NCBI RefSeq assembly: GCF_000143415.4
Contig: NW_003314276.1
Location: forward strand, 1,650,696-1,714,695
DNA: 64,000 nucleotides
Direction: 5' to 3'
Origin: Selaginella moellendorffii
Lineage: Eukaryota; Plantae; Lycopodiophyta
The position numbers were made by a program, and so were the translations under genes. This document shows positions 1 to 44,137 of the stretch, piece by piece. Every line of letters starts with the position of its first letter. Position 1 is the stretch's first letter. The notes under the pieces are model-generated. The model made no database searches. It saw only the letters and a program-made list of their open reading frames with translations, and had not been told where the DNA came from.

Positions 1-2250
1 TATGTTTGAAGGTGTGAGTGTGATTCGAGGGATGAAAACTCATGTACCTTTGAATTGGCCTAATACAATTTCACAGTCTAGAATTGTTGGTAAGGCACGT
101 TTAAGTATGAGTTGTGTACCATTACATAGTTCAGTCGATGGACTATATTCCTTAATAGAATAAGGATGATACTTTTTTTAAGCAAGAGTTTATATGGTGG
201 AAGACCAGAAGAAGTAATGGAATTTAAGAATTCAATTAAAAAATCTTCTGGGTGTTAAGTATCAAAAAAGTCAACACTTTTATAAATATGTATATCACTA
301 GGTAAGGATAATATATTGTTGAGTTGTTGAATGGATTTTAATAGTGGCATAATCATAACCTTTATAAACATATTAAAATAGATATTTAATACTTTTATAG
401 TTGCACATATTTCAATATTTATATGAGCTTTATATTTCTTACAGAGGTACTTGTTATAAGGTACAACCCAATGGTGTTCTATATGATAACCATTTTTAAA
501 AACTGTACATCTATTATCTGGTCTATAATAATCTGGATATCCATTAACTGAAAATGTTGTTTTATAATTAAATTTTTTTGGAAAACCTTTCAAGCAAGAA
601 CAATTTTCCATGTAAGGACTATTAGGATAAAAAAAAGTCCATATAGTCCATGCATCATATGCGATATAACTATCTTTTTATAGTGTCTTTCAAAAATTCT
701 TTAAGTTTTATATAGAAAACTATAGAGACCAAATCAAGACGATCTTCAGAACTTTCATTTGGATGTAAGTTTTCTATAATTTCTAACCATTTAAGGTTGC
801 AAGTGAAAGTAATGAAAATATTTAATTTTGAGTAATGGGCAACAATTGCCATTACATCTTGATAATTTTGTTGCATTGCTCTAGATCCACCATCAAATGT
901 TGAAGGTAGTATAACAATTTTACAAGGGTTCATATTTTCATTTGAAGCACAATTCGCAACATAATCCATAAGACTAGTATACATTTCTACTCATAATTGT
1001 TTTTGGTGGGTATGATAGTAATATAGGTTATTACTCTCAACTTTGACATATGCATCAACAATGTATTGTTGAGTAAGCTTGCCAACATGTAAGATTTAGT
1101 TGAAACCTAATTGTAGTGTGTCTCTTTTAGATAAGCAATATCTATAATATAGAAGTAATGTAGTTTGAAGTTGTCACATATTCAAAATATTTGCATACCA
1201 TCCTTTATCACCAAAAGGAAATATCAAAAGATAAACCATTGAATCATAATTAACATTAAATCTTTCTAAAATGATTTGCCATAGGATATATACAAATTTC
1301 ACGTCCACGTGGGAGCTCACAAACAAAAACAACAGCAACATCATTTGTTTGTGGTATATTATAATGTTGATTATCTATTCCTTCATTCCTTAGTAACATA
1401 TAAACACCATGTAAAGGACAGCCTATAATTGCTACTTCATGAAGTTCTTTTTATTCCATTTCATGAGATTATCAATCTCAAGGATGATACCACCAGTAAT
1501 ATTAATCAGATAAAAAAGTGCAAAGACTTTTCCCAAGATTACTTTAGTACATCTTTCTGTAAGTCTGTGCGTATGAATTAATATGACAGAGTGTATCAAG
1601 ATGTAATAGGAAATCTTGCTCACAACTTTTATTAAATGGGTTTTAATGCCTTATATCTATGGCTTATTGTGTATCTAGCATATAAAATTGCTTGTAAGAT
1701 AGACTTTGATCACCAGAAAAATGTGATGACATGACACTATGGTAAATCAGCCCATGAATTCTAAAGCAATAAGGACCATTACCTCTTAAAGTGCCAATGT
1801 TAGCACCCATTGATGCAAATGCAAGGGCACTATTATAGTGTTTAATATTACTTCTGAAATTAGAGCTTTTGTAAAGCGTAAGTAAAGTATTTGGCAAAGA
1901 TAATATAGGTGGCAATATCACTTGACCATGTTGACAACACATAGCAATATTCTCATCTTTAAAATGTGATGCATTACAAAAAACACAAATAGCTGATAAA
2001 AAACCAATTTCAAAAGTTGAAATTTGTGAATCTTTGTAAATAGTGTGACTTGCTAGTGTGGTTTGTGAAAGTGGAGATGGTGTCATGATGTGTATATATT
2101 TCATTTTGATTTGAAGTAATTTGAAGTGGCTCAAAGTGTTTATCAGAATTGTTAGTATCAAAATTCTTATCTAAATTATTGGTATTTCTTATAGTTCTAA
2201 GAAGATGACGAAGGTGAGGCATAATTTAAATTTTTCAAGTACAAAGCTAG
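1..2250 (-). pseudogene. Helitron Rep/PIF1-helicase (RepHel) remnant, copy 1; internally deleted and running off the window
   Basis: ORF fragments CVFCNASHF..CCQHG, YNSALAFASMGA, GPYCFRIHG, ILPSTFDGGSRAMQQNYQD, FITFTCN, WVVPYN, HINIEIC, plus helicase pieces near 1-300. Many stops and frameshifts. Relative to copy 2 it lacks the HUH block and about 1.8 kb between Rep and helicase. Confidence 0.92.
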
Positions 2251-2613
2251 AAAACTATAGCTTATGTAGGTTCATGTTTGTAAAAAAACTCAAATTTGCA
2301 AGAGAAATACGAAACAATATTTAATATGTGGTGGAGGCTAAGGATATAAACAAATATGAACCTACTGTGTGCTTGGTTCTGTGTGCCTATCTAGAGTTTT
2401 CCAATTATTTGCCAGAAAAAAGTGTGCCAAAGAAAGACTAACCTTTTGCTACAAATTGTTGTGATTCTTGGCGGTGGTCTTAAGCCCAAAACCTAATTGT
2501 GAGATTTAGGGTTATGTGAAGCAAGAGTCTGCCAAATACAAATTACCCAAAGAGAAAAATAAAAGTAATAGACAAGACTAAATAATTCATATTATAAAAA
2601 AACACAACACAAG

Positions 2614-3740
2614 TTATGGTAATAAAAGCGAACATGTAAATTTTACGAAATTTGGTAGATCAGAATTTATCTGAAATGGGAAAACAACTGCTTTCCCTGT
2701 AGTAGATAAATTCAAAATGGTTGTAGATAAAGACTTCTCCTCCACAAATAAAACAGCTCCATTCAAACAAATAGCATTGCATTCTTTACCAACACCTTTA
2801 GCCAGATTTTCACCTCCAACATCACCACCTGTTTCTCCTTGCATATACCATAGCTGCATGCTATTTTTGAATTGAGTGCAGCACAACACACCTGTCCGAC
2901 CATGGCAGGAAACAAATAAACCATGATTCCTGTGTAGCCGCTCATCCCATGGCCAAGTCTGCTTTAATTCAAACCTCAACCCTTCCAAATCCAAAGTGAA
3001 CAGACCAACATACTCTGGATCATTCAAATCCTTGTAGTGACCACAAAGCAAATACAAAGTAGCGCTGCCCACCATTTCCCCCGTATTCTCCAACTGACAC
3101 CATCCCAATGGTGTGCTAGCAGCCCTCCAGCATCCCAGTCTCGAGTTGTATACATGAGCTGTTAACATTGTGTAGACACTTCTCACCTTACGTCTGATCT
3201 CAACTTTTTCTTCTTCACAAGAACGACTTTTTACAAAGCAGACTGTGTATTCCTTGAAGTCTTGACTGATGCCCATGTAAGAGGATGAAATCAGCCCTTT
3301 AGCCCTGAGATCTGGCAACGCTCTAAAGCATCCAGTGACTGGATTGGCTACTAGGACCTGGTTCCCTTTTAAAAAGCAGAGCAATCCACCAGCACTTCCT
3401 ATAAGAAGGAAGTCCCCTGTGGGCACACTTCCATCTCTATCCAGTTGAAGGCGTTGCTGTTGTTAAATGGGTTGCCCCTGAAAATCCTTCCGCACAACGT
3501 GCCTGCAAGAATATAAGGAACAGCTGCTGGAATGCTTGCCTGTGCGTGCCGCACGCCAAACCCTGGGCAGTCGATCAATTCCCGCCACCGTTTGCACACT
3601 GCTCTCATCCGCCAGACATCGCGCAGCGGCAGCTGCTGCAACACCTCTTCCTCAATCTCTTGGTTCATTTGCAACCCTAGTGATCTTAACCTATTCTTAA
3701 AAGGTAACCATAAGGAGTGAGTAATGAACTCGTCCTGCAT
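2614..3740 (-). pseudogene. F-box protein with C-terminal interaction domain, copy 1; single frameshift near 3415
   Basis: F-box motif EEVLQQLPLRDVWRMRAVCKRWRELI (ORF 3399-3740) continues in another frame as GSAGGLLCF..VANPVTG..LP (ORF 2614-3426). Confidence 0.85.
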
Positions 3741-3945
3741 TGAATTCTGGAGCTTCTCCAGTGTGAGCGAGTAGATCGATCTCTGGCAGCAAACGCCTTC
3801 ATTTAAATAGGATGGAGCATCGCCTTGGAGAAGCCATGTCTTCTTCTTCTTCCTCTTTCTTCTTGATGTGATGCTACTAAGAAAGATTGGATCTTGTCTA
3901 GCTCTCTCACCCTGATTGGCACCGAGGAAAGAAAAAACGATGAAG
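3724..3945 (-). repeat. Duplicated fragment of the ABI5/ABF 5'UTR and N-terminus (inverted copy of ~30300-30597)
   Basis: The reverse complement reads ...GAAGAAGAAGACATGGCTTCTCCAAGG...ATCTACTCGCTCACACTGGAGAAGCTCCAGAATTCAATG, matching the bZIP start region (SIYSLTLEELQNSM). Confidence 0.9.
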
Positions 3946-3949
3946 AATT

Positions 3950-4850
3950 CTCAATACATTTAGAATATGCCTGAATATTCTAGCATATTACAGTTGATAC
4001 TTTTTAAAACACTTCTAGGTATATTCTAGCATATTTTATGATCTCGGTTAGAATGTACTTAGATTAGGTTATAATGTAAAAGAATACATTAAAAAGAATT
4101 TATTTTTTTGGATAAGTAGGCCTATTGGCCATAACCTCATAAGTTACATATGAATGCAACAAAAAGATATAATGCTTGATTCTTGGACTTTTATTACACT
4201 TATGTTTAAACTTTTGGCTCAATACTTCGATGCAGACATAGCAATGATATTATATTTGGTTTGTATGAACTGTTTCCACACATAAAAGTTAGCTTGATTG
4301 ATTTCGAGCAAAGATTTATTTATCTATATATTCAAGTACTATGGTGGATATGGTTGCAAAGACTTCCTTACATAGAAAAAGGTCAAGATTTACACTTTCA
4401 GGTTGCAATATTATAAACATCTTTACTTTTGACATAATTGATTTTGTATGTTGTATAACTACATTTACAGTGTTGGGAAACTTTAAATAAACTTATCCAA
4501 AATGTTGAAGTGATTTAATTACTAAGTGACCTACAGATAAAATATTTAATTATATTTAACATTAGTTATCTTTTATATTAATTCAACATTGCATTATTAT
4601 ATTTAATCTTTATGTGTAAAATAATTAATTAATAATTTAGAAAATAAATAACTCTTTGCATATGGTACTTTGTTTTTAATATTAAATTATTTTATATTCC
4701 ATTAAACTCAATTAAAAAGATATATATTATAGTGGATGTTGATGGTGTGGTTGTGGCTAATGCTAATATCCTTCACTAAGTACAAAATGTTATAATTGAT
4801 ATATTAGAGCAAATATATAATGCATATCACAACGTCCAAAACATGATGAT
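3950..4850 (+). repeat. AT-rich ~0.9 kb direct repeat, copy 1 (copy 2 at ~26622-27460)
   Basis: Colinear similarity from CAATACATTTAGAATAT..AGATTAGGTTATAATGTAA to ..AATGTTATAATTGAT..AATGCATAT. Confidence 0.85.
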
Positions 4851-5529
4851 CCCATCACACTTTCAACCCTGTTGCAATGCTCCACCACGTTGTTGAGGCC
4901 CAGCGTGTAACTCCACCCCAACGATCCCTGCCATCTGAGCGACACCCCATGGGTGAGAGAAGTCCTTTCAATTCAGAGTGGATCACTGATTTTGTAGGGG
5001 TAGTTTCTATTGTGCAGTGGCTGGTGAAGCAATGCAAGCCCAAATTAGAATGTGATCCACTATGGCAGTCCTGTATATTCCATAATGCCGATTGATGGCT
5101 ATATTCTAAACTATGCTGTTTCAATCCAATGGCTCGAAAAATATATGTATCCATATCAAAACAGTATTATAAACAGTTTAAACTCTAGTTTGAATTTGAT
5201 AAGCATGGCATTTTGGACGAGATTCTCGCTGCTCGAGGCGGATTTAGGAGTTAGGAGGACGGGTTCTAGATGGGTTGATCTCGCGCTTGATCGTCTCGCC
5301 CTTGACACCAAACCGCATCTCGCTCTGGATCGTTCAAGAAGCCTGCGAGTTCACTCGGTGGTGGATGAAAAGATGCAGATCTCTTGGAACCTCGGCCTCC
5401 ATCGCGATGGTTCTAAGCGTTTCTGAGGTACTATGAAAGAGCAGATGATTTATCAACCAGTTTGGTTCAAGAACTCGGAGAAGTTTAACAAACATAACTT
5501 TTATAAACTTCTAATGCCACGAACATGCA

Positions 5530-7267: not shown

Positions 7268-7759
7268 TTGCTGGATTAAGGGTAAAATGTGTGGGAGATG
7301 TGGGCGAGTGCATTTAAGCCAAGCAGATGGAGTGGATCTATCCCTAAGAAACTACAGGAACTTGTAGCGTTACACTGTTACTCATTGGTTAGTGGTGGTT
7401 TGTGTGTGGTTGCTCACTCTTCAATGATATTGGACGACATCGCAAGGCAGATTGGCTATTGTAAAAGTAAACCCGCAAAGATTTTGTTTAACATATGCCA
7501 ATAAAAACAATAACATCAATGGAGTGAGGTCGTGAAGGATATGGTTTGGAGAGGGCTTCCACAGTGGATAGAGGGCCAACATGGAATGCAGGCTCTTGGC
7601 ATCGGCTAGCACATGGTACTTTCTCAGCGAGAAGAAGGATGTTCTCCCTCAGCTTCTGGAGCCCAATCGAGCTGGAAGGTATGGCATTCATATTTCTTCC
7701 ATTGTTTTTTAGTTCTAGGCTTTCGTCCAGGGAGGAAGGCATCCTATTTCATGGGGAGA

Positions 7760-7870
7760 TGGAGCTGGATGGGGGCGGTGAGGAAAGATTTTTGCACCAT
7801 TTGCAAGAGTGGTGGCAAAGTTTTCTGCTGCGATGCTTGTATCACCTCCAGTGCTTGGATCCGCCAATGA
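7760..7870 (+). pseudogene. PHD-finger gene fragment (chromatin-reader-like)
   Basis: DFCTICKSGGKVFCCDAC matches the first half of a C4HC3 PHD finger; no intact continuation. Confidence 0.55.
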
Positions 7871-9989
7871 AGTCTGTTCTATGGAGGAGCTCGAGATGCC
7901 TCTCATACTGGCATTATGTATTTATTTTTGTTTCAGGAGGAGCCTCTACGTAGATTCTCAAATGGCATGGCAAAGGTTATCTCATTGCAAGAGGGAAGCA
8001 CTAACAGGAGTTTCATGCACTCTCACGGAGAAGGAAGACGGAGGAAGGCAAGAAGGCAGAAGAAGAGCTGATGAAGCATTTCCTTGTCAGGTGGAAGTCG
8101 AGGTCTTACCCTTCATTGCTCTTGGTAAGTCTTTTCTTGCTTATAGACACTAGTCATTCGTACGAAGCATCACAGGATCCGCTGAATGAAATGGAGAGCT
8201 TCAAGGCTGTATCATGGCTTGCGAATGAAGATGAACCAATTCCATAAAACGTGTGAGGCCATGAAACAATGTCCAACACTGTATGAGAATATGTCAAGCA
8301 TATTCTATTATTTAGTGTATTCTAGGCTCTCCTTCACATTTTTGGTACACCAGACAAGGTAGAGTGACTTCTTGGTTTGTTCACCCTTTGAATCTGCAAA
8401 AGGATTGAAGTGAAAAGTTGAGGTTTTGGGTCATGGAATCTGGAACAAGAATTCTTGCAGGATATAAAGTGGATTGAGCTGATTCTTGTAGCAGAGGAAG
8501 CACCACATTATGATCTATCCAATGAATCCAAAATGGCTAGGTTTATGTAGGAATTTGAGGATTTTGATATCATGTTCTTTCTTGGATTTGTGTTGGATTT
8601 GTAAATGGGGTATATGGGTGGAAGCACTTGATCTTGAAGTGTCTATAAAGTGTTTTTCTTGATTCATTTCGTGATGGAATGAGCTGCATGCAAGTGATTT
8701 TTTGGTCATCAAGATATCTTGAAATGATTTGAGATTTCTAGTGTTTGGTAGATTTGAGTTAATTCACACACTTGATTTCATCATGGCTAAGTTCAATGTG
8801 TATAAGATGCTATTGCAAGAGTCCATCTATGAGTATTATAGTTACTTCAAACAATATATTCATAAGTGTGAGAGCGTGAACATATAGTGTAATGGAGTTC
8901 AGGTGGTAAAGGCATATGTGAATTGTATGCATCTATTTTGGCACAAAGTTTGTGGGAAGTGCCTGAAGAAGCTGGACAAAGTTATACAATATGCTATCAC
9001 TCAAGAACACAAGAGGTTGTTTTAGCAAAGAAAAACGGTGTACAAGGAGGGCTATCACACAGTGCATTGGCAGAGATCTACTCCTTCCTCTACTTACTCT
9101 ACTTAGATGCTCTCTAATGGCACTTTCAAGGAAAGTCAGCAGCAGATGACCAAGAGGTTGAATCGGATAGAAATAGAGACAAATTCATTGAGGCAACAAT
9201 AGGCTGGGCATGGCCAAGGCCAAGGATACTCTAGCCGGGGGCGAAGAGTAGTTGATGCAGGAGTAGTATCAGTTTATGAGTTTTGTCAGCTTTATAGCCA
9301 TGATAAGGAATGTTAGAGAGCAAAGCAAGAATATATGACATGGGGAAACCATGCTATTGTTTCCACACCTACTCCTTGGCCTCCACAACAACAAGGTTTT
9401 CAGCACAAGCCTCTGCAGGAGAATGTACAGTTGGTCCAAAACCAAGCCAGATCAAAAAGGAAAAGCTCGGACAGATTTAGTGAATCTCGTTCACTTCTCA
9501 AGACCACATGACTTCATTGATGATCATATTGGTGTCAATGAGAATGAGGAGTGGATTGCTGGCTCACATCCGTGGATAGGACAGTTCAAAAGTGATAATA
9601 TTGGTTATGCAGCAACATGGTTGGCAAGGAGGCATGGGCCTTGGATCTTCTGGATAGGGGTGCTTATATCCGATTGAGCCAGTCACCATAGTGAATAGAC
9701 AGGGTGTGGGAATAGAGATCATCTTAGGTGTCCTTGACTCACAGGTGCAATATGTTGAAATGTAAACAAAGTCTCCAGACACACCAGATTCCCCCTACAA
9801 CTTGGAAACATTTGCTATCACCACGCAAAGGTAGGAGGCATACTATCCATTGGTGCCACTTTTAGTAGACGATGCTTTGCCTTCATGTCAATCGTTCTCA
9901 ATGAAGAAGGTTGTTTTACAAATTGTAACTCAAGCTCAGTGTTGAGTTGGAAGCTGAAAAGCTAGTAGTCACCCAAGTTGACAAGTTGA

Positions 9990-10640: not shown

Positions 10641-10894
10641 TGATTTTAATTATAATATTGATTGGTTGTGAAACTTTACGACATTTCTTTGAAAACTAAA
10701 AAGGTTGACTAAGAGTTATATTTTATTTCCTTTTAAAGTGAAACTATATATATATTTGGAAGAAAAAACAACAGCACAATTAAAAGAAACAACATTTTCT
10801 AAGTATTCTATATTATTGACATGATTATATTCCTCCATTTTTTAATATTTTGTATAGTGATATAACCATTTGCTTCTCTCTTGATCAAGTCTCC

Positions 10895-11125
10895 AACTTT
10901 TGCAGAAAAAAAGGGGAAGAAAGAGAAGAAAGGAGGAGGATAAACAGATCACACGAGATTAGCTATAGATCACAAGCAGAATGGAGCTCCAGAGCATGCA
11001 TCAGGAGCACTAGGGAGGAAACCCTGGAAGGAGCGAGAGAAACAAAGAGATGCGCATATCTCACACATTCGTATCGGGCGCTTGGCCCAGCGCTGTCGTG
11101 AAATTGCCCGAGGAAAATAAAAGTA
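10895..11125 (-). repeat. Inverted duplicate of the ABI5/ABF upstream/5'UTR-intron region (~29965-30265)
   Basis: The reverse complement contains CCAGCGCTGGG..TAGGGTTTCCTCCC..CTCCTGATGCATGCTC..CTCGTGTGATCTG-like blocks found at 30020-30260. Confidence 0.85.
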
Positions 11126-11149
11126 ATAGACGAGACTAAGTAATTCATA

Positions 11150-12194
11150 TTATAAAAAGAAACACAATATAAAAGCAAAGGTGTAAATTCTACGAAATTT
11201 GCTAGAGTGGAATTTTTCTGAAATGGGAAAGCAACTGCATCTGTAGTAGATAAATTCAAAATGGTTGTAGATAAAGACTTCTTCTCCACAAATAAAACAG
11301 CTCCATTCAAACATATAGCATTGGATACTTTACCAACACCTTTAGCCAGATTTTCACCTCCAACATCACCACCTGTTTCTCCTTGCATATACCATAGATG
11401 CATGCTGTTTTTGAATTGAGTGCAGCACAACACACCTGTCCGACCATGGCAGGAAACAAATAAACCATTGTTCCTGTGTAGCCGCTCATCCCATGGCCAA
11501 GTCTGCTTTAATTCAAACCTCAACCCTTCCAAATCCAAAGTGAACAGACCGACATACTCTGGATCATTCAAATTCTTGTAGTGACCACAAAGCAAATACA
11601 AAGTAGTGTTGCCCACCATTTCCCCATATTCTGCAACTGACACCATCCCAATGCTGTGCTAGCAGCCCTCCAGAATCCCAGTCTCGAGTTGTATACATGA
11701 GCTGTTGTAAACATTGTGTAGACACTTCTCACCTTACCTCTGATCTCAACTTTTTTTTCTTCACAAGAACGACTTTTTACAAAGCAGACTGTGTATTCCT
11801 TGAAGTCTTGACTGATGCCCATGTAAGAGGATGAAATCAGCCCTTTAGCCCTGAGATCTGGGAACGCTCTAAAGCATCCAGTGACTGGATTGCCTACTAG
11901 GACCTGGTTCCATTTCAAAAAGCAGAGCTATAAGAAACCCCACTGTGGGCACACTTCCATCTCTATCCAGTTGAAGGCGTTGCTGTTGTTAAATGGGTTG
12001 CCCCTGAACATGCACAACGTGCCTGCAAGAACATAAGGAATAGCTGCTGGAATGTTTGCCTGTGCATGCCGCACGCCAAAGCCTGGGGAGTCGATCAATT
12101 CCCGCCACCGTTTGCACACTGCTCTCATCTGCCAGACATCGCGCAGCGGCAGCTGCTGCAACACCTCCTCCTCAAGTTCTTGATTCATTTGCAA
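11150..12194 (-). pseudogene. F-box protein, copy 2 (paralog of 2614-3740); stop and frameshift
   Basis: Three ORF pieces (11928-12194, 11568-11918, 10963-11646) are near-identical in protein sequence to copy 1. Confidence 0.88.
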
Positions 12195-14055
12195 CCCTAA
12201 TGATCTTAACCTATTTTTAAAAGGTAATCATAAGGATCGTGAACTCATCCCTCCATGAGAGCCAACTTCTCCCGTGTTAAAACCCAGCACAAAACCTGAA
12301 AATAGAATTTCCTCTGAAAGAACGAAAAGATCTTACCTATTCTTAGCTAGGGCATCCTACAAAGATGAGTGGAAAATTCTTGTGCAGCATATGAGAGATC
12401 CAAGCAGGCTCTCCAATTCTAGCCATAGCAGTCCATTGCTAATCCAGCCCTAAAGAAAATTAGGATGGATAAGACCCTACACACATGTATATCCAACACT
12501 ACAAAGGACGATCACTTGACATACCCATCCATAAACCTTTATACTTGACCAACACAAGCTCTTGGGCCTCCATTTCTACCACTTGGCACTGCTTCTTCTT
12601 TTGCAAACTTTGAGGCTAAAGAGTTGCAGTAAAGAAGAGAAATCTGGAGCAAGTGAAACTTTGGTGTCAAGGAGGAGTTGTGATAAAGAAAATTTCTTTG
12701 GCTGCAAGGGTAGAGTAGGAGGGGCTGTGGTAAAAGGAGAGTTTTTCCCTCTTTGGCTACAACTTCCTAGTATTGCCCAGCAAATGCTGGATGAGTACAA
12801 AAATTAGTAATTTTATACAATTTTTTTCTTTTGATATTTTTATATGTATATATATATACACACACAATAGCATAGACTATATATTTAGAACACTGGTATA
12901 TTCCTAAAAGTGTTAAAGAAGAATTACTAAGTAAATATTATTGGTTAAGATAATATATGCAGTATTACTTAGGAATATGGGTATATTTAGAATATTAAGA
13001 TTTTAATAAATTTAATACTCAACCTAGAACAAATTAAAACAAATTTTTTTAGGAATGAGTTTTTTTATAGTTATAAGAATAAATATATTTAGTACAGAGA
13101 AAAACAATAAAATAAGAATTACAAAAAATAATTTTATTAATTAGATGTTACATGTAAAATATGTTTTTATTTGGGATATAAACAAATTTAGAATCGTAAA
13201 ATGTTAAGAAAACAAATATATTACTACCCAGACTCATAGAAATATAAAGAAGAACTACTAAGATTAATTATCATTAATTTAGGTAAGCATCATTTAAATA
13301 TTATGTGTTTACTTGGAATATGAATAAATATACAACTAAGATTTAAAGAGTTACTTTGCCATGTGTGTTTCTTAGAATATAGAACAATAAAACTTTAAGA
13401 ACACTAATCTACTACCCAGACCAAGTAAAACTAAGAAAAGAAATACAAAAAAGATTTTTTATTAATATATAAACTATAAATTTAAAACCTTGTTTATATT
13501 AAGACTATGAGAACCTATGCATATTTTTCCCACATCTCAACTCTTCCCTAACTTCTGAGCATATTGTAATTGCCCAATCAATACATCAGTACAGCTTCTC
13601 TATTTATCAACTAAACATATACATAAAGAAGAAATTTGTAAGACAGGGTAAGTGCCATCTTAATTATACTAACTGATTGAGGCAAGTTTAAATCAATATG
13701 AATTTTAATCATAGTATCCAAGCTAGGAAACAATATTCTTGGCCCAATAGTTTTGCCACCTAAGCAACATCTCCTGTACAATCACCTCAGCAGCCATGCC
13801 CTATGGGAACCCCAAATGCTGTTGTTCTTGTGCCCACACAATCCTTTGCAAGAGTTTTCTAAGAGCCAAAAAAAAATTGATAAGCAATGTAGGAGGGCCA
13901 CAGAACCACAGTAGGCAACATTTTTTGTCACTTACTGTCCATGGCTTATGCCCCAACAATTCTTTATCCCAGCACCCAGCCTTCGTCCACAAACAGAGGA
14001 AGGTGGAATAGCAAAAGAGTTTGTGCTTACCCCGACTTTGATCAACCACAGTGGA

Positions 14056-14155
14056 NNNNNNNNNNNNNNNNNNNNNNNNNNNNNNNNNNNNNNNNNNNNN
14101 NNNNNNNNNNNNNNNNNNNNNNNNNNNNNNNNNNNNNNNNNNNNNNNNNNNNNNN
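14056..14155. other. Assembly gap (100 N)
   Basis: Run of N. Confidence 1.
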
Positions 14156-14929
14156 GTGGACTTGACACTCTCAGCCTTCTGCTACTAGAACTCTTGCATG
14201 AGTGAGCAGAAGCAATGGGAGATAAAATCCTAGCTCTGCGATCCAGGCAGCCCTAGAGCTTGGTTCTGTAGTGTGCAGAGAGGTAGCAACACAGCCCAGA
14301 AGTGTAGAGCAAGCAATACAAGAGCCCGTAAAATAGGCATGCTGAGAAAATGAAACTCACATAAGAAAGCAAGAAGCAAGATCTTGACACAAACAGTACC
14401 AGGACATGGCTCATTCTAGTGGCGTTGACATAGTGCCTCAGATTTAGATTGCAAATCGGCAACAATGGCAAGGGCTGTCTCACCATTTCATAAATCCTAG
14501 ATAAACAAAAACCAATTCACTCGACAGGTGACAGGCGCAGTCACAGTCAACACATTTGCATATGCCACATGTTGCAGTGCCTTCTTCTTTTGCCAGCTTG
14601 GCCACCTCCTATTGGCCGAGAGCAAACATCAGCATAAGATGTGGTTAAAGAAATATTATTGATTATTCAATAAGATGTGGTTAAAGAAATAATCACTTTA
14701 CAATTACCCCCCATCGGACGGCTGCGATTGGCTGGATCTGGTGGCCTAGAAAGTTTGGCACTCCCTCCTTATTATAATAGACTAGCACTTGCTTAACATA
14801 TACTGTGCTGTTAACAAATACTGTTTTGAATGTTAAGTCTAATGAACAAATAAAACAGCTTGCTAATAGGACAACATTCTTGATCAAGAATTTGCTTTAG
14901 TGCTACAAACAATGTATGGAAGATTTAAT

Positions 14930-17900
14930 ATAAGCCTCCTTATATACTATGTTGATAGTGAAAGTAGGACTCAAAGGGAATAACTATCCTTGGAGTGATG
15001 TGTTTTGTACTTTAATGCCTAATACTGCTAGTGATGTGCATCTTGATAAAGCCATATAAAATTGACCATGGGTGAAAACTGGATATGGCAAGTGTATTCC
15101 GACTCAGTCAAATGTTTGGCCTTGACATTTAGAGATTGTAAGGCAATACCCTAGATGCACTAGAAATTGTCTTCTGGACATTTTAAATGGAATTTTTGTG
15201 AATGAAGGTGTGAGTGTGATTTGAGGGATGAAAGCTCGTGTACCTTTGAATTGGCCTAATACAATTTCATAGTCTAGAACTGTTAGTAAGGCATGTTAAG
15301 TATGAGGCGTGCACCATTACATAGTCCAATCAAGACATATATTCCTTAATAGAATAAAGATAATACCTTATTTAAGCAAGAGTTTATGTGGTGGAAGACC
15401 AGAAGGAGTAATGGAATTTAAGAATTCAACTCAAAAATCTTCTAGGTGTTCAGTATCAAATCAACACTTTTATAAATATGTATATCATCAAGTAAGGAAG
15501 AGACTATAGCATTATTAATAGGAAAAGTATCATCATTAAGTGGGGTAAGTATGACTCTATTAGATGCAACGTAGGGGTCTGAAATATTCTGTAGAGATGG
15601 GAAAATATAATCAACAATAGAGGATATTATTACCATATGTAAGGTAATACAATAGATTCTGAAGGCAAATTGGGTAAATTCATATAATTATTACCATTTC
15701 CAATTTGAAGAAGTCAATCAGCTTATAAAGAGTTGTTTTCAATTAGTCTCATATTCCTTTTTAATGGAAGTGTTCTAAAAAATTTTCATAACCTATTTAT
15801 TTTTACTAAATTTGAAACAATTTGTGCTCAACGACCATATGGAATAACTGGTAGTGTTTGTCTAAGTCACCACTTCCAATAATAAAAATTCCTCCAAAAG
15901 GTAATTCATTTATTTTTATATCTTGTAATGCTAAATTAATGGTAGAAAATGTATGTGTATTGTAGCGCATGTGATCATAGGATAAGATTTGGATATACTG
16001 TCATCGTGGATCCTTAAAACCTTGGGGGATAAATGGGGATAAAATAGCCACTAAAGGTTCTCTCATCAAGCAATTGCCCTTTTCCCAGTTGGTTTAAGAG
16101 GAGAAAGATAGGATGCGCTACATGTATGAACCATACTAATTTCATCCTATATGAACGCATTTTTATTTTTTCTGGCTTGCTTTACTATTAGCTGTAATAG
16201 TAGAAGTAGAAATTTCATTTATTGGAACAGGAAGTTTAAAAGTTATATATAATATTTGACCATTATGCAATAAAGTGCTTACAATACCTGTCCAAGCCAT
16301 ACTAATTACATTTTTGTTTAGAAGTTGAAATATATGTATAAGAGTGTTAAGTAGAAAATTTTTACCAATACTACCAGGACCATCAATGAAAATATATCAA
16401 TTTTTCTCGGTTAATCGTGCTGAGGATATCATTATATATAATCTATTGCTCATCATTAAACTGAAGTAAATTTTGTTCTACAAAATAAATGAATTGTGTC
16501 AAATTAATATGATTATTTGCATCAAAGTTTGTATAAAATAAAAGTAATTCATAATCTTGATTGGATTTTCCATATAGATTGAATTTCCTATTTATATCAT
16601 GTAAAGCACACTCATAACAAAGTAATGGATCTATTAGTATAAAATATTTAGAAAAAGAGTTTTTGCATTTTTCCCACAAGGAATAAAGATTTTTTGGACT
16701 ATAAAAGACACATAAAAAAAAATATTTGTCTTAATTGTGGTGGCATTTTGAAAGAGCAAGCATCTTCTAAACATTTTTCCCATTCTGTATTATTTGCTAG
16801 AAGTCCCATAGCAGATGCAGTAAGTTGAAATATTTCAAAATAAATATTATGAACTATTTTTAGATTGTTAAAAGAAGTAGCCCCTCTTTTGTAAAGTAAT
16901 ATAAAATATAAATGATAAAGTTTAGTATTAGATAAGGAAAAAAAATACATTTGTGAGATAATATTTTATTGATATCTAATGGTGAGTGCATTTATTATAT
17001 GTATAATGTAGAGGAATTTTAGGATACCTATACTGCCTTGCATTTGGATCATGTCTATTTAATTCAAACCATTTTGTTAACATAGTACCATTTTGAGTAG
17101 CTCTTTGAAGTTTAATTTGCTTATTACCTTCGATGAAATAAATATTTTCAAAATTTTCTAGATGAAGAAGAAGATGAATTATAAATGTTGAATAGCCATG
17201 AATTTTAAATTGGAAAAGTTTCTATATAGTTTCTGGAGCAGAAACATAATAGGTATTTAAAAAACTTGAAATTTCATTCTAGTTTAAGCTATTATCATGT
17301 TGTTGAGTTGTTGAAAGGATTTTAATAGTGACATAATCATAACCTTTATAAAAATATTAAAATAGATATTTAATACTTTTTATAGTTGCATATATTTTAA
17401 TATTTATATGAGCTTTCTATTTTTTACAGAGGTACTTGTTATAAGGTACAACCCAATGGTTATCCATATAATAACCATATTTAAAAATTGTATGTCCATT
17501 GTCTTGTCCATAATAATCTGGATATCCATTAACTGAAAATGTTGTTTCATAATTAAATTTTTTGGAAAACCTTTCGAGCAAGAACTATTTTCCATGCAAG
17601 AACTATTAGGATAAAAAAAGTCCACATGGTCCATGCATATAACTATTTCAAAAATTTCAGGCTCGTCATGAGGATTTAGTAATCCAACCATGATATATTG
17701 ATTAATTGCATCACGGTCTTTAATTTTATTTTCATGGGCTAGAATTCCTAGAAAATGACAATGTGGGAGACCTCTTTTTTGGAACTCAATTGCATATATA
17801 TATGCTATATATTTTCCAAATACATATCTTTTTATTGTGTCTTTCAAAAATTCTTTAAGGTTAATATGGAAAACTCTAGAGACCAAATTAGGACAGTCTT

Positions 17901-19340
17901 TAGGACTTTCATTTGGATGTAAGTGTTTTATAATTTCTATTCATTTAGGTTTGCAAGTGAAAGTAAAGAAAATATCTAGTTTTGAATAATGAGTAACAAT
18001 TGCCATTGCATCTTGATAATTTAGTTGCATTGCTCTAGGTTGAAGGTAGTATAACAATTTTACTGGGGTTTATATTTTCATTTAAAACATGATTTGCAAC
18101 ATAATCCATAAGACTAATATACATTTCTACTCATATTTTTTTTTGGTGGGTACGATAGTAATATTGATAATATTATAATATATAGATTATGTTGCAAATC
18201 ATGTTTTAAACTGAAAATATGCATCAATAATTATGCATTGACAATATATTGTTGAGTAAGCTTGCTAGCATGTAAGATTTGGTCAAAACCTAATTGTAGT
18301 GTGTCTCTTTTAGATAAGCGATATGCCTAATATAAAAGTAATGTAGTTTGACATTGTCACATGTTCACAATATTTGTATGCCATCCTTTATCACCAAAAG
18401 AAAATATCCAAAGATAAACCATAGGATCACCATTAACACCAAGTGGTTAAATCTTTCTAGAATGATTTACCCTGGAATATATATCAATTTCCCCATCCAC
18501 ATGGGGGTTCTTCATTCTCATTAACAAAAAAAATAGCAACATCATTTGTTTGTGGTATATTATAATGTCAATTATCTGTTCCTTCATTTCTTAGTAACAT
18601 ATAAACACCATGTAAAGGATGGCCTGTAACTACTACTTCATGAAGTTTTTTTTATTCCATTTCATACATCATTCTGTAAGCATGTGCATATGAATTAATA
18701 TGACAAAGGAGTGTATCAAGATATAATAGTAAATCTTACTCACAACTTGTATTAAATGGGTTTTGATGCCTTATATATGTGGCTTCTTGTGTATCTAGCA
18801 TATAAAGTTGCCCGTAAGATGGACTTTGATCACCAGAAGAATGTGATGACATGACACTATGGTAAATCGACCTATGAATTCTAAATTAATAAAGACTATT
18901 ACCCCTTAAAGTGTCAATGTTAGCACCCATTGATGCAAATGCAAAGGCACTATTATAGTGTTTAATATTAGTTCTGAAATTAGAGTTTTTGTTTTGCTTG
19001 TAAAGTGTAAGTAAAGTATTTGGCAAAGGTAATACAGTTGGCAATATCACTTGACTATGTTGACAACACATAGTAATGTTCTCATTTTTAAAATGTGATA
19101 CATTACAAATAACACAAATAGATGATAAAAAACCATGAAATTTGTGAATCTTTATAAATAGTGTGACTTGCTAGTGTGGTTTGTGAAGGTGGAGATGGTG
19201 TAGTGGATATTGCTTGATATGTATATATTTCATTTTAATTTGAAGCGGCTCAGGTGTTTATCAAAATTGTTAGTATCGAAATTCTTATCTAAATGATTGG
19301 TATTTTTTATAGTTCTAAGAAGATGACGAAGGTGAGGCAT
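14930..19340 (-). pseudogene. Helitron RepHel remnant, copy 2 (near full length)
   Basis: HUH motif EFQKRGLPHCH (ORF 17404-17886), YFYKGYD, Walker A FIDGPGSIGKNF (~16355-16395), and PIF1 C-terminal motifs TISKCQGQT and FTHGQFYMALSR (~15040-15145). Many stops. Confidence 0.93.
15961..16122 (+). mobile_element. Solo LTR of the TRIM family (162 bp), TSD TGTAT
   Basis: TGTAGCGCA...TGCGCTACA; reverse-complement match to the LTRs at 58960-59121; TGTAT on both flanks. Confidence 0.92.
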
Positions 19341-19499
19341 AATTTAAAATTTTCAAGTACAAAGCTAGAAAACTATAGCTTATGCAGGTTCATGTTTGTA
19401 AACAAACTTGAATTTACAAGAGAAATATGAAATAGTGTTTGGAGGTTAAGGATATAAACAAACATGAATGCTGTATGGTTAGAAGAAAGATTGACTTTT

Positions 19500-19661
19500 T
19501 GTAGCACACCTTATGTCTCTCCCCTTAAGCTAACTGGAAAAGGGGCAATTGCTTGATGAGAGAGCCTTTAATAGCTATTTTATCTCCATTTATCCCTCAA
19601 AGTTCCAAAGATCCATGGTAACAATATATCTAAATCTCATCCCATAATCACATGCGCTACA
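19500..19661 (-). mobile_element. Solo LTR of the TRIM family, TSD CTTTT/CCTTT
   Basis: Direct match to 58960-59121. The empty site is seen in the paralogous Helitron sequence at ~2431-2450. Confidence 0.9.
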
Positions 19662-21980
19662 CCTTTTGTTGCAAGCTATTGTGATTTTTGGTGGTGCCTT
19701 TAAGCCCAAAACCTAATTGTGAGATTTAGGGTTATATAAAGCAAGAGCTAAAAAATTATGTCATGCCGAATACAGATTGGATCTAGCCCATTTGGGCAAT
19801 TGGGATTTCCATAGCATCACAAGGCATCGAGGTTTATGGCTGCCTTAGCTACAGCGGTAGTGGTGTCAGATCGGTCATCGCCATAGCTCGAGAATCTCCA
19901 GTGCCACCACAGAGCAACAGTCACAGTGGAGCTGATCCAAGGCATTGAAATCGTGATCGGCAGCGATGGATCGACCACAAGAGTGCCATAGATTTCAATC
20001 CCTCTCTAGTCACCAAGAGATCTCTGGTGACAAAGGTTTTCTTGTAGTCTGATCTAGATTTTCAAGAGGATCAAGTGCTCCAGCATCACCAGCAGCAGTA
20101 CAAGATCGAGTCAGGCACACAGGTGAAGGGAAAAATTGAGTTTGTAGTTGTACACCAAGTACCTCTTCTCTAGCTTCCTTATGCTTTAGTTTGATGACAT
20201 CAAGTGTAGGAATGCATTTCAGCTACATTTGGGAATGATGTTTCATCTGCATGTGTAGTTTAAATGGGGGCTTAGGTCACTTCTATAATTTGCATTGAGG
20301 CAAGGCTGTGTAAAATTTTTGTCGCTGTTTTAACTACAATTGTTTTCTACTATTAGGATAGAGTGCTATATTAGTCTGTCAAAAAATTCTTGCATATGGT
20401 GGAGAGGTACATCATGTGAGTTCACGTGCTTTTCTAACTTCACGTGAACTATAGGACATATCAAGATGTCTTTTATGGGTCCAACAACGGCACGGGAACT
20501 GGCCCCTCGTGAAAACTGTCAGAATACAAGAGGAGTTTATAACGCTTTTGAGTTTCTATAAAATGTGAGAGTTTCCTGGGATTTCCAGTATGATGAGACT
20601 TCTTTGCGTTGTAGGTTTTGGACTCTTATTCCGAAGATTCTGAAGAAAACTATACCAAGGCCAGTTCCCTTTGCTAAAGGATTTGTTAAATCACTCAAGT
20701 AAGGTTTTCTTTGTTGCTGTCAATTTGAACTCCAATGCTAATGCTTGCAAAATTCATAGGACTAATGCTATGGAGTTTTTTTCCAAATTGAAGAATGGTG
20801 ATGATTATAGAAAGGAAGCATTTAGAAGCAGCTAGTTTGTATACAGGCTTTTATTTGAAGTATATCCATGCCTCCTCATGAATGGTCTAATTTATAGAGA
20901 AAGTCAAGTATACTGTCATTTATTAAATCTTAGGGACATTCTTAATGTGTCACTTGAACTTAGCCACAATTTTCAGTGATGGTGGCCCTTGAGCTTTACA
21001 AATAACTTGTGTTGCATGCAAATAGCTGGTATTGGGAAAGATTTGAAGTATGTGTCAGTTGCATTGGTGGTTATTGAAAGCCATCCAGTTGTATGTAGTA
21101 CTTAAAGATGAAGTTTTTGTCATATATCCTCCTGGTAATCCTTTCTTTTTTTTTTTTAATTGAGCATGACTCAATTGCCTTATAGGTTGGAGGAGTAGCC
21201 TCTACACCTAGCATTGCCAAATTTATTGAAGATAAGTGTGTATTTTGATTCATTTTATCAATCCCTTATGTTTGTACCATGCAAAATTGTCTACTTAATT
21301 CAAGTGACAAAGAAATGAGCGACAAAGCTCCCAAGCTTGAGGTCAGCAGCATGTAGGCAAGATAGATATTTGTTTTTTGGCCAGGTAAGCAAAGGCATAG
21401 GTACCATTAGAAATGGTGTAGCCACCAAGTTAAATTGTGTATCACATAATTTCGAATTTAAAGCTGTAGTGTCTATAGTTCAAAATTATCATCTATGATA
21501 CACCAAGTCATAATGTTCCTACATTTTAAAGAAGTCACAAAGATGATTAGGATGCCTGCTTTGGTGGAGAGTTTTGCAAGAGATTTGAGGTTGTAATAAT
21601 ACAATGGATCTCATATACAACTATGCAGCAAGTTTATAGACAATATATTGTACAAACAGAAAATGGAAGCACACTAAAACAGGAAATGAAAGTGAATAGT
21701 ACTTTAATCAACCTTGAACACAATCACTTTTGGCGAGCTTTGATCAGCACTAGTCAAGAATCAGAAGTGGTCTATTGATGGCTTATTTGTCTCCAAAAGT
21801 TTGATTGCCCCAGGCATTCGAGTAGAAGTGAACATTTTTAGAAACTGGCTAGGAGTGACACCATATCCTTGGTGTATATAAGTGTCCTTCATGTAAATGT
21901 CTTAGGGGTGGCCAGTATCTGGATAGAATTTGTCATGAACTTGCAAAGTTTGAAAAAATGTTCATTTGTTCTTGCAATGA

Positions 21981-23107
21981 TGTAGTGCATGTGGTTTTGA
22001 CCCTTTATCTTATGGTGATTTACCATAGGATAACACCACGAAGTGGAACCTAAACCCTTTTTATGCCATGTGACACATGCCACATGTCCAAAGGACAATG
22101 GTGTAGAACCCGAGGTTCAGGGCCTTGAGCCACTGAACGAAGGAACAGTGCCAAGCTCCCAAACATGGAGTCAAGGAGCATTAGCATTAGAGCATGGAAT
22201 GACTCCCTAGCATATAGCCCAAGGAGCAAAAGAACAGGAGCCTAGAGCAACTTGGAACAATCCTAGAGTAACCAGCATTCGAATGCCAGAACTAACACGC
22301 AAAACAAAGCCAAACGGAGTCTAGCGCTATTTCAGCATACTGGTGGCTTAATGCGAGGACATGGGTACTCCACCAGCTAGCATGGTGTGGAACTTGGGCT
22401 TAAACCCAAGCCGGACGCAAAATAAGGACATGCATGCAAATAGGAGTTAGACTATGCCTTAGGTTGGTCGACCATGCCTGACCTACCCACTATCCCTACT
22501 ATATATTTGGAACCCCCTATAGCCCCCCGCCCCCCTTTTTGAGGAACACATGCTTTGAACTTTCACCCCAAGCCCCCCTTAGTATCAGGAGTTAGTCTCT
22601 AGGACAAGCTCAAAACTTACTAAATATGGAATGTCCCTAAATTGTGAATTTGGACACGGAACGAACACCATTGTGTTCAAGCTAATCTCTACATTCCGTA
22701 AATATGCCAAATGAGCAAATCTAGACACTTTCCATAAATAGTATTTAAAACTGAAATGAGACTAACACAAAGGGCATGATAGTGAGGGTGTTTGGCAGAA
22801 TTTAGGGAATATTGAGGGACCAAGCTCAATATCATGGGGGTTCCCAACACTAGCAAGTGCAAGTCAACATCATGAGTTTCTCGTTATCGTGCCAAGTATG
22901 CTTGACTAAATGACAACGTAAGATTTCCTTCCTTAGTGCCCTTCCAGTCTAAGTGCACATGTGATGACCAGTTTCTCAACTAGTTTAGGAGGAGACTAAT
23001 AAAGGGTCTAGCAATACCAACCTCCTACCGTCATGGCAGTATAAAAAGAATATCCAAAAGGACTAGCTCATAGGTAACTTTCGATACCTGAAATCACATT
23101 CACGACA
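21981..23107 (-). mobile_element. Solo LTR (chromovirus-related family, long variant), TSD AATGA/AATGG
   Basis: TGTAG...CACGACA; colinear with 48301-49443. Confidence 0.88.
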
Positions 23108-24749
23108 AATGGTGTCACCAACCAATATCTCGTGTTTGTTTCTCGACCCTAAACTTTTTGCAAACATGGCAGCCGCAACAAACAGAAATTGCTCGAGGGT
23201 TTTCAGGGATGAAATGGTCATGCACCTATTGACAAAACATGCATTCTGAACTGCTAGTATACATCAAGAAAGATATACCCCAAAGAAGTTCTTTCTGTAT
23301 ATGAATAAGACAAAGTGCAATTGCTTTTGTATGTGGTCCTAAGGCATATTATCAGGAATTTTCAAGACAATAGTTGAGGGTGCAATCCTAAACACATTTT
23401 TATCTTTAGTTCCTTGGAGATTGTAGAAACTATGACTTGGCATGTCCCTAGAAAACCATGATGATTTGAGCTCATGATAAATATGGTCTATATCACCTAG
23501 CACATGCACCTACTTTTGAAGTTCATCCAAAAATTCTAGTCATAATATTACAAATACTTTATAGATGTTTTTAACTTCAAGATCATCAGCAATGAATATG
23601 ATGTTTGTAGTGCTAGGCATTTGATCTACACTAGTGATTGCCATAGCAATTGTTATAGAAGTATAAGCAAAAGCATCCTCTACAAACTAACTTAGTAGAA
23701 CAATGTCTGATGGTTTGACAAAATCAAGCATTGGAGGAGCCTTCTTTGGCCATGCTCGAACATGTGCGGCTATAGAAATATCTACTGAGAGACAATGGAG
23801 CCCCAAATGATATTTTGGGATTATTAACTCTAACCTTGTAGTGTTGAATACATAGCTAGTTAGATGGCTTGAAAAGGTGGCTGTATTTATCAGTATTGAA
23901 GCTATTGCAAGGTGCATGTCGTAGTTGTCAATGAAATCAATATTAAGGAACCTTGATGTTGATGCCATACTTGTTGAGTGGACCTTATATTGAAATCATA
24001 ACTGCTGTACCGAGATAATACATATATAAAAAGTAGCTCACCACCTGAATGAAATTGTAGATCCATAATATGAACATATGTATATTATGTTTCCTAAAAG
24101 GAAGCAATCAGATTCCATATGCCAAGGTCTAGAATGCTATATAATTTACGCTTAGCTAAAAAATCCCGTTACAAACCCATAACTAAAAAAAAAATCTAAA
24201 ATTGAGCAATACCTGGCACTTGGCTGGAAGTATGTGTCTAAAAACCTAGATCTAGCTATAGAGAAGGTTTAAGAAGCAAAAAAGCCAAGTGCCAATACCA
24301 CTAAAATAGTAAAGGGACTTTGAAAATGTAATGGTTGTTTGAAGTCTTCTTGTACACTATTCCTCAATCTGTAAACACTATATTATAATAGACTAAGTAG
24401 CTGAAGCACTAAGGTGCTTAGATTCTGGAAAGAAAAGTGATTAAATTCTGCTTTATCAAGATAAACACAAACTTGGTTCACTGCTCTCTCCACCCATCTC
24501 TACATCATCTAGAATTTGTTGTTGCTGCAAAGAAACATCATCTAGTAATGACTGGTAATTGCAATCTACATGGTCTTGAGACCCCACATTAGAATCACTA
24601 GCGACCACTGCTATCGGAGAGAAAGATCCTGAATGAAGCAATTGACTAACTTTGGGTTAATCACAATTGTTGGCCCAAAGGCCTACTTAAGTTTTGCCAT
24701 GTCATTAGGCAAATGCAAAACTCGCAATAGCTTTATCACTTGACAAGAC

Positions 24750-24865
24750 AAGCAACAGGTGCAGTCACAGTCAACACATTTGCATGTGACATGTGTCACA
24801 GCGCCTTCTTCTCCCACCCCACGCGGTTTGGCTGCCTCCCATTGGCCAGGAGCAAACATCAACAC
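24750..24865 (-). repeat. Internal copy of the Helitron 5'-subterminal segment (also at ~26358-26467 and ~14530-14630)
   Basis: GCAGTCACAGTCAACACATTTGCAT...CCTCCCATTGGCC.GAGCAAACATCA-like block occurs three times. Confidence 0.85.
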
Positions 24866-24869
24866 TTTC

Positions 24870-25990
24870 TCCTCATTATTGGAGGACTTCTTGAAGAGTG
24901 TGTTCTTGAGAGCTTGAGTAGTCAAGGGGCGATTTTTTGCTGCTGGATCCATTAGAGACTTGATCAAGCTCTGGAACGCAAGAGAGAATCTAGGAAGAAG
25001 AGCGAGCTTTCCCTGGTGGATGGCTTGATACCAGACGCCAGTGGTGGTGAGTATCTCGCGAGCTTGTAGAATGTTGCCCCTAGGGAAAACATGTTAGCTT
25101 TGTCAAGGTGGCTGTGATCATTGTTGATGAGCTCCATCGGGAGATATCTCAAGTTGCCATCCTCGTTGGAAATGGTTCCATAAATTTGACTAGTGAGGCC
25201 TAAGTTGCCAATCTTTTAGACACTATTGTGGATGTAGATCTTGTCGGGCTTCACATCCAGATGAGTGAGGCCATGTAAGTGTAAGTGCTTCAAAGTGTTT
25301 AAGAGCTGTCATGCATAACAAAATAAGAAAAGAACACAATTGAGCTGCTTACTTGAAACATCGCCTCGGTCAGCTTGTTCTTTGTGAATGTCCATCTCAT
25401 CTTGTAGATTCATCTCGCATAGCTCCATTTGGATATATAAAAAGTCATTCTCAAACCATAAAGAGAAGTAGTGCACTACATTTTCATGGTAACCTGGAAG
25501 CTGGATAAGTTTTGAGGAAGCCAGTGGTAATACTGAAAGAAAAAAGCCAACTCAAGACAGAAAAGTGCCTGAACTTCTCTTAGTGCTTTCCTCTTGCAAA
25601 GAGAAAAATTTGCCAAAACAATACCATAGTCTCTTGAATATAGTGATGAACCGATCACTCAGGAAGAGCTTCCCGATGAACCGATCACTCGATGAGAGAA
25701 CTGATCACTCAGTAAGTGCTCTCTCGGGAAACACATTAGTGTTAAAAAAAGAGTTCCGGAAGCATGGGGGGACATGATGTGCTGTCGCAGAGACAATGTC
25801 TTTGCATTCTCTGCTTCTTGGTTCAAATATTCATCTAAGAAAAGAAGAACAAAACGAAAAAAGCTTGAGTGAGTGTTTAAGATTGTCAAAGCAAAGCTAG
25901 ACATATCACTTCTTGGTCTTTTGCTCCATAGAGGCATCAGACCCACAAGGAATAGCTTTGAGATTTGAGCATCATGGTCTCATTGCCAGT
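24870..25990 (-). pseudogene. WEE1: WEE1-like protein kinase fragment, intron-containing and disrupted
   Basis: ALREVQAL, WFENDFLYIQMELCE, HLDVKPDKIYI, KIGNLGL, RYLPMELINNDHSHLDKANMFSLGAT, GKLALLP..LIKSLMDP. Contains stops and lost catalytic residues. Confidence 0.82.
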
Positions 25991-26621
25991 ATTTCTCCTG
26001 CAGAAAGAAAAACCAGAAAAGAAAAGAAAACTGTTAAGTTGAGAGCATAAGAAAGTGAAAACTTGTGATGGGGTTCTCGGGAAAAAAAACAGCACACAGT
26101 ATTGCAAAAACAAAATCAGGAAAAGAACGAAAACAGCAAGAAAAGATACCAAGAGTTGTGCTCGAGAAGAAGAAAAGAAAGTAAAATGGACACATTAGAA
26201 AGCGCGGACACAGACAGTACCAAGACACGGTTCATTCCAGTGGTATTGAAACAGTGCCTCAGATTTGGATTGTGAATCGGCAGCAGTAGCAGGGGCTGTC
26301 TCACCATTTCATAAACCCTAAAAAAACATTACAAAATAAAAATAATTCACTCCACATGCAACAGGTGCAGTCATGGCCAACACTTTGCATGTGCCACATG
26401 TTGTAGCACCTTCTTCTCACACCCCACCCAATTTGGCCACCTCCCATTGGCCGAGAGCAAACATCAGCATGATTATTCGCTAACATGGTTAAAAAAATAA
26501 CCCCTTTACAGTTACACCCCCATCAAGCGGCTGTGATTGGCTGGATCTGGTGGCCCAGAAAGTTCGGCAACTCCTCCTTATTATGATAGATGATCAATGA
26601 ACTTTCGGGTTCTACAAAATT

Positions 26622-43800: not shown

Positions 43801-44037
43801 CTTTTACTTAAATTAGTCATGCCACAACATAAAGACTGTTTGAGAGGGAGAATAAGAAGGAAACAGGGTAAGAAATAATCAAGAGATTAAAGTAATAGAA
43901 GTAGAAATAGAAGCTAAAAGATAATATGGAATAAAAATGAGAGGAATAAAAGAAATATAAGGGACTACAAGGCAAGAGAGAGAAACCTCAAAATCACATT
44001 TGGCATTATTCTGTTGCAATTAATTCATACTAAGGAN

Positions 44038-44137
44038 NNNNNNNNNNNNNNNNNNNNNNNNNNNNNNNNNNNNNNNNNNNNNNNNNNNNNNNNNNNNNNN
44101 NNNNNNNNNNNNNNNNNNNNNNNNNNNNNNNNNNNNA
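44038..44137. other. Assembly gap (100 N)
   Basis: Run of N. Confidence 1.

Follow-up and report, generated by a model that had tools for sequence, protein, structure and literature searches.

Does scaffold GL377580.1 of the lycophyte Selaginella moellendorffii carry a head-to-tail row of Helitrons, each loaded with different host genes, or was a single junction between two such elements repeated by other means? The question arises from a stretch of 64,000 nt (GL377580.1:1650696-1714695, hereafter the window), in which the 3' end of one Helitron directly meets the 5' end of another on the minus strand. A first interpretation, made from the DNA letters without database searches (the sequence-only reading), took the locus for sibling Helitrons with a variable cargo bay between the 5' end and RepHel, the Rep and PIF1-type helicase region. 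We favour, with about as much doubt as confidence, one old and genuine head-to-tail Helitron junction that was later multiplied by segmental duplication of the block around it. What looks like the second element (unit B) is most likely the interval between two junction copies, in which host DNA from an F-box/cytochrome P450 (P450) array has been trapped.

Materials and methods

Copies of the termini were compared in the window and in the loci L001, L002, L004 and L005. L001 reads in the Helitron sense direction; its positions 1-6454 correspond to window positions 6454-1 (100% identity), and it extends 14.7 kb to the left of window position 1. RepHel copies were mapped by tblastn with the reference protein P0004 (1385 amino acids, with Helitron_like_N, PIF1 and Pif1_2B domains), and divergences are Kimura two-parameter distances (K2P, or K). 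The 5' leaders are labelled a (at 26590), b (at junction J1), c (at J2, L001), e (at J3, L004) and f (L005); RepHel copies A and B lie in the window and E in L004, and the host blocks C and D lie in L001 and L002, respectively. The S. moellendorffii assembly is one which we take to contain two haplotypes. Scaffold GL377577.1, which carries a collinear ABI5-like/kinesin/jacalin neighbourhood at K2P 0.018-0.021 from GL377580.1, is most likely the second of them.

Results

An exact junction in three copies

On the minus strand, J1 reads ...TTGTTAACAGCACAGTATATGTTAAGCAAGTGCTAG/TCTATTATAATAAGGAGG..., with CTAG at 14785-14782 and TC at 14781-14780; its upstream side runs ...GCAAGTGCTAG and is followed by TCTATTATAATAAGGAGG at 14782/14781. 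The base after CTAG (14782) opens the second leader, TCTATTATAATAAGG, and the absence of a spacer in the sequence-only reading is thereby borne out. The leader recurs at 26591/26590 (...TTGATCA/TCTATCATAATAAGGAGG), where it had been reported to follow an A. An A does stand at 26591, and the homology between the ~390-bp leaders a and b begins exactly at TC, while their upstream flanks are unrelated. The TC start thus coincides with the boundary of leader homology, and CTAG closes the RepHel tail in A, B and E, as at the termini of Helitron1 elements. An 18-nt terminus pattern matched twice in the window, against 0.16 matches expected by chance, and no further termini were found there with up to three mismatches allowed.

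Two more copies of the junction lie outside the window. A matching CTAG had been suggested to the left of position 1, and the second junction, J2 (L001 6861/6862), is indeed met 407-408 bases beyond that position, 15.2 kb to the left of J1. The third, J3, is at L004 7751/7752 on scaffold GL377577.1. The exact 16-mer GCAAGTGCTAGTCTAT is common to J1, J2 (L001 6851-6866) and J3 (L004 7741-7756). Leader c, after J2, leads into the same S1 segment and the same host genes as in unit B, and a fourth leader-S1-F-box copy, f, starts at leader position ~105 immediately after a solo long terminal repeat (LTR).

Both window leaders (26207-26320 and 14386-14500) retain ATGAAATGGTGAGAC, an ATG with a splice-donor-like GT four bases on, downstream of CCAAT-like boxes. 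This region may be a promoter with a tiny first exon.

An assembly artefact, that is, a misjoin at the gap of unspecified bases in the window or two haplotypes placed in tandem, could also give an apparent repeat, and the setting invites the suspicion, because the gap is only 626 bp from J1 and the assembly holds two haplotypes of a repeat-rich region. However, J1 lies within a gap-free contig and J2 and J3 in gap-free loci. Paralog C (L001 7380-7590) aligns straight through the gap with ~0 bases missing, and the contig ends on both sides carry TCCAC; judged from this alignment, the gap appears to be effectively empty and the join collinear with the paralog. Units B and C differ by K ~0.1, whereas the haplotypes differ from each other by ~0.02. 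An artefact is therefore very improbable.

The interior of unit B is a host array

Unit B spans 15.2 kb from J1 to J2. In the sense direction it consists of the leader, S1, F-box copy 2, S2, a PHD-like segment, a P450 gene, the T segment, a piece of an ABI5-like gene, F-box copy 1 and RepHel B (Table 1). From F-box copy 2 to F-box copy 1, the sequence makes up a single 8.5-kb period of a host array (F-box/S2/PHD-like/P450/T). This period is also present in blocks C and D, and the array is partly repeated at 26647-30560, to the right of unit A and outside any Helitron ends. Block D contains the host block and a ~100-bp remnant of the leader, without a RepHel; block C has the leader, S1 and the host block, and neither a RepHel nor a 3' end was found within its 14.3 kb. 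The ABI5-like gene itself gave a bZIP_1 match on the open reading frame (ORF) 30354-31397.

The P450, which had been taken for a piece, is a whole gene of 510 amino acids, annotated as intact in B, C and D; searched singly, its exons matched the p450 Pfam model with E 1.8e-37 and 1.7e-15. The ORF 2614-3426 of F-box copy 1 matches S. moellendorffii proteins. Among annotated proteins, no F-box relatives were found beyond this locus and its counterpart scaffold, and so nothing shows that the supposed cargo of B ever moved. A gene-capturing Helitron would be expected to hold the captured DNA within its termini and to be a chimera mobile away from the parental locus. What was found here is a local array with Helitron-free copies beside it, and unit B as a mobile gene-shuffling vehicle is not supported. 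It is more likely that the 12-kb interior of B was never captured by a Helitron.

An earlier end to the element, before the F-box/P450 region, had also been considered. There is no CTRR end at the S1 boundary in B, and copies c, e and f run collinearly into the pre-F-box region, where the one conserved structure is a small GCCAGC/GCTGG stem. In B, the boundary of S1 is a 615-bp deletion relative to C and was rejected as a Helitron 3' end.

The P450 copies of B, C and D are 96-98% identical, while their flanks are ~90% identical. Differences by codon position (20/12/20, 17/13/22 and 7/13/6) show no third-position excess; this even spread is uninformative about purifying selection. With these identities and the even spread, gene conversion among the copies seems likeliest. 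The P450 segment is inverted in B (window 5284-7402) with respect to C (L001 14031-16197) and D (L002 16852-19104).

Breakpoints and divergence

Beyond a nested LTR of the terminal-repeat retrotransposon in miniature (TRIM) type, homology between A and B resumes (19661-19747 matches 2441-2527) and then stops at 19747 (A) and 2527 (B); within ~12 bp of this point, B is joined to the 3' flank of F-box copy 1. Five further F-box copies (copy 2, C, D, e and f) run on into S2 instead, and the join of F-box flank and RepHel is found only in B. The homology between E and A extends to 20062, beyond which the two are different. Such differing left breakpoints in B and E are as expected from segmental duplication, since Helitron transposition starts at a fixed 5' end.

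The distances point the same way. For RepHel with the 3' tail, K2P is 0.130 (A-B), 0.110 (A-E) and 0.106 (B-E); for the leader with S1 it is 0.096 (b-c), 0.093 (b-e) and 0.089 (c-e); and for the leader only, a differs from b, c and e by 0.19-0.22. Pairing each RepHel with the leader downstream of it leaves the rank order unchanged. A single round of block copying, at K ~0.1, would explain these values, with an older split parting leader a from the other three. At K ~0.1, the block copies are ~5 times older than the haplotype split (K 0.018-0.021); they are therefore older paralogs, and none is an allele of another.

The sequence-only reading would have A, B and C as sibling Helitrons that landed successively on the 5' end of the previous element, each with captured host DNA, B having taken ~12 kb of the neighbouring F-box/P450 array. 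Every junction is indeed an exact CTAG/TC, B opens with a complete leader and closes with RepHel and CTAG, and consecutive insertion next to a resident Helitron was favoured for a maize pair (PMC2267711). However, siblings should show equal leader a-b and RepHel A-B divergence, and the values are 0.19 and 0.13, a gap of ~3 standard errors in pairwise alignment and ~2 in the all-copy alignment. The supposed cargo keeps the continuity of the host array, includes an intact gene and has Helitron-free copies adjoining; the F-box-flank/RepHel join occurs only in B; C shows no RepHel or 3' end; and a look for the cargo genes among annotated proteins gave no dispersed copies. For B, the unique breakpoint and the divergences fit a single block duplication instead, and we consider successive sibling insertion rather unlikely.

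A rolling-circle concatemer would arise if an element failed to terminate and a multimer was integrated, its interiors later diverging through deletions, insertions and replacement. Precise junctions without a host A were used to argue for this in bats by Pritham and Feschotte, as cited in PMC2267711, circles of Helraiser have the same joint (PMC5876387), and B and C have in common the leader, S1 and the arrangement of the host block. A tandem multimer should, however, repeat the same parts in the same order at equal divergence, whereas A and B have unrelated interiors in the stretch from leader to RepHel, and leader a is twice as diverged as the others (the K values of 0.19 and 0.13 again being unequal). 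Moreover, C is without a RepHel, and block D shows that the array is duplicated without complete Helitron ends. We regard a concatemer as improbable. There is a slightly slimmer chance that the junction block was itself the driver, with rolling-circle read-through from the leader repeatedly copying the adjacent F-box/P450 block in place; if so, the tandem array, with whole and intact P450 genes in it, would be a product of Helitron activity.

Several observations weigh against an old junction multiplied by segmental duplication. The differences in distance among A, B and E are within error. The F-box of C resembles copy 1 (93%) more than copy 2 (88%), and among the P450s those of C and D are most alike (97.9%); these similarities depart from the predicted pairing, so gene conversion must be invoked. 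Collinearity through the junctions does not by itself discriminate, because a sibling stack would give the same homology on both sides. The status of the leader as a terminus depends on the one copy with a host flank, at 26590, and no clean empty A/T site was found in paralog D or in the other haplotype. Unit A is flanked at its 5' end by a host T segment, whose paralog in block D (26597-26680 against L002 10984-11072) matches up to 6 nt from the terminus and then diverges. A comparison with the other haplotype had been proposed to reveal an empty site; that scaffold has a different arrangement to the left of the point matching window 28168, with no empty site to be seen. To the right of window 28150-28170 (L005 ~11296) the sequences of both scaffolds are collinear (K ~0.02), and to the left they are wholly different: there, the other haplotype has a leader-S1-F-box-S2 block toward the ABI5-like gene and the window has T and Helitron A.

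Unit A and its decay

Unit A (26590-14782; 11,809 bp, including 1.45 kb of nested LTRs) comprises, in order, the leader, a kinase fragment, a detached leader piece, a 1.13-kb solo LTR, two TRIM-type solo LTRs, RepHel and the CTAG tail. It is plausibly a single dead Helitron carrying a kinase fragment, although its RepHel part, from ~20058 (AAAA/TCTAGAT), may be a separate element. A third junction was sought inside unit A at the start of the A-E homology (20058-20062), and no CTRR precedes that point.

That each unit runs from a 5' leader through several kb to RepHel was confirmed with P0004, which maps to both. Helitron_like_N was found on ORFs of both units, and both are decayed: RepHel A has at least 30 stops and ~9 frame changes, and RepHel B retains P0004 residues 8-624 and ~1152-1283 (at 2008-4) and is dead, without the PIF1 core. 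As all RepHel copies are dead, nothing at the locus is mobile now. In the search for close relatives, a full-library protein search with the Rep ORF returned many Helitron proteins, the best at 47% identity, and a word search returned two short metagenomic matches.

The TTAACA/TGTTAA hairpin described in the sequence-only reading is present in A as an AT-rich stem of 6-9 bp, although it folds no better than shuffled sequence (z -1.6), and its right arm is broken in the paralogous 3' ends (TGTTGG in B, where the fold z is -0.06, and TGCTAG in E). Another stem, 38 nt upstream of the 3' end (window 14820-14860, L001 6783-6823), pairs in both A and B. It has one double change from G-C to A-T (CTGTTTT/AAAACAG to CTATTTT/AAAATAG) between them, a single compensatory event that proves nothing.

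Of the WEE1 gene that one unit was said to carry, the kinase fragment in A stands and the identity is weak (Pkinase E 0.017; best Protein Data Bank (PDB) match Wee1-like kinase 2, E 0.13). A 100-117-bp part of the leader with a CCAAT-like box, the same sub-segment that is detached in A, is also found alone in block D (L002 10240-10340), where it precedes the T segment by ~440 bp.

Table 1 Features of the Helitron region in the window
Feature	Position	Strand	Evidence or remark
RepHel B, running off the window toward J2	1..2527	-	tblastn
Breakpoint between F-box 3' flank and Helitron interior	2527..2540	-	corresponds to 19747 in A
F-box copy 1, frameshifted, cut in its 3' flank	2540..3740	-	F-box Pfam E 2e-8; 91% identical to copy 2
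~200-bp copy of the start of the ABI5-like bZIP gene (30354-30560)	3729..3910	-	73% identity
T segment of the host array	3999..5199	-	paralogous to 26647-28148 (flank of A)
Complete P450 gene, annotated 510 amino acids	5530..7267	-	gene call L003 15307-17044
PHD-like segment, annotated 151-amino-acid gene	7448..8277	+	no Pfam match
F-box copy 2, annotated SELMODRAFT_411567	11101..12236	-	
S1, non-coding, after the leader in all four b/c/e/f copies	12256..14385	-	
Assembly gap, apparently of effectively zero length	14056..14155		alignment of paralog C
Leader b, second 5' end abutting CTAG (J1)	14386..14781	-	alignment, K2P
3' tail of A, CTAG at 14785-14782	14782..14917	-	weak AT-rich hairpin 14793-14814
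RepHel A, full-length, dead	14918..19134	-	tblastn, P0004 residues 9-1377; Helitron_like_N E 1.5e-15
Second TRIM LTR, splitting the PIF1 part of RepHel A	15961-16122		
TRIM-type solo LTR upstream of RepHel A	19500..19662	+	92% identical to 58960-59122
Solo LTR (TGTAG...CGACA), nested in A	21981..23107	+	TG..CA ends; AATGA/AATGG target duplication
Detached 117-bp leader piece (positions ~120-240), in frame after the kinase fragment	24747..24864	-	
Kinase fragment, WEE1-like, exon and intron remains	24870..25700	-	ORFs 25309-25476, 24964-25152 and 24683-24967
Leader a, Helitron 5' end (TCTATCATAATAAGG...), host A at 26591	26207..26590	-	sharp homology start against 14781

Other features of the region

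The ~1.13-kb TGTAG...CGACA repeat nested in A, which has 5-bp target duplications, has further copies at 48301-49443 (with a CCCCT/CCCCT duplication), 56133-56978 and 62694-63460 in the window and at L004 15553-16695 and L005 5007-6139; all of these look like solo LTRs from a single family of retrotransposons. A germin/cupin-like fragment (L001 17450-17849) and a gypsy-type retrotransposon (L001 18400-21148) with an internal inverted duplication at 18875-19365 are situated to the left of block C. A second assembly gap of 100 N, at window 44037-44136, is outside the Helitron region.

Discussion

The favoured course of events at this locus is as follows. A RepHel-bearing Helitron of the autonomous type ends in CTAG, and directly at that point starts the TC leader of a second member of the family, a more distant one; this old junction is situated in a locally duplicated array of F-box, PHD-like and P450 genes beside an ABI5-like gene. 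The block running from RepHel across the CTAG/TC junction into the leader, S1 and the F-box gene would later have been copied with different end points each time, yielding J2 (15.2 kb to the left) and J3 (on GL377577.1). Unit B would then contain a leader, S1, one array period with an intact P450, a duplication breakpoint and a truncated RepHel. That segmental duplication produced the later copies is suggested by the pattern of breakpoints and distances.

Head-to-tail Helitron pairs are already known. A precise pair was published for maize in 2008 (PMC2267711), and for the bat Myotis, Pritham and Feschotte (2007), as cited in PMC2267711, reported head-to-tail junctions that are perfect. As in those pairs, a CTAG 3' end is here followed directly by TC, giving a G/T junction with no host A, and the neighbours differ in sequence and in gene fragments. 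However, the upstream partner here includes a RepHel, which is dead, no 3' end can be recognised for the downstream "element", and there are three diverged junction copies that look block-duplicated. Compared with canonical plant Helitron1 elements (RepHel, TC start, hairpin-CTRR end, A/T target), the locus agrees in having RepHel with Helitron_like_N and PIF1 near the 3' end, a TC start, a CTAG end and an A before the 5' end. It differs in its weak subterminal hairpin, which is not conserved, and, from the autonomous elements, in that all copies are dead. Like the gene-fragment Helitrons of maize, A holds an exon/intron kinase fragment between leader and RepHel, whereas the "cargo" of B is a contiguous 12-kb local array with a whole gene. 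What is new here is that the repeated junction is most likely a duplicated block and the large "cargo" DNA of a host array.

Precise head-to-tail pairs serve as evidence for rolling-circle transposition or for insertion aimed at the ends of resident Helitrons. The present case is a caution for annotation and adds no new mechanism: a repeated CTAG/TC junction need not mean repeated insertion or a concatemer, because ordinary segmental duplication can multiply a single one, and host genes trapped between the junction copies then mimic cargo. Tallies of "stacked" or "gene-carrying" Helitrons in S. moellendorffii therefore need to be checked for duplicated junctions.

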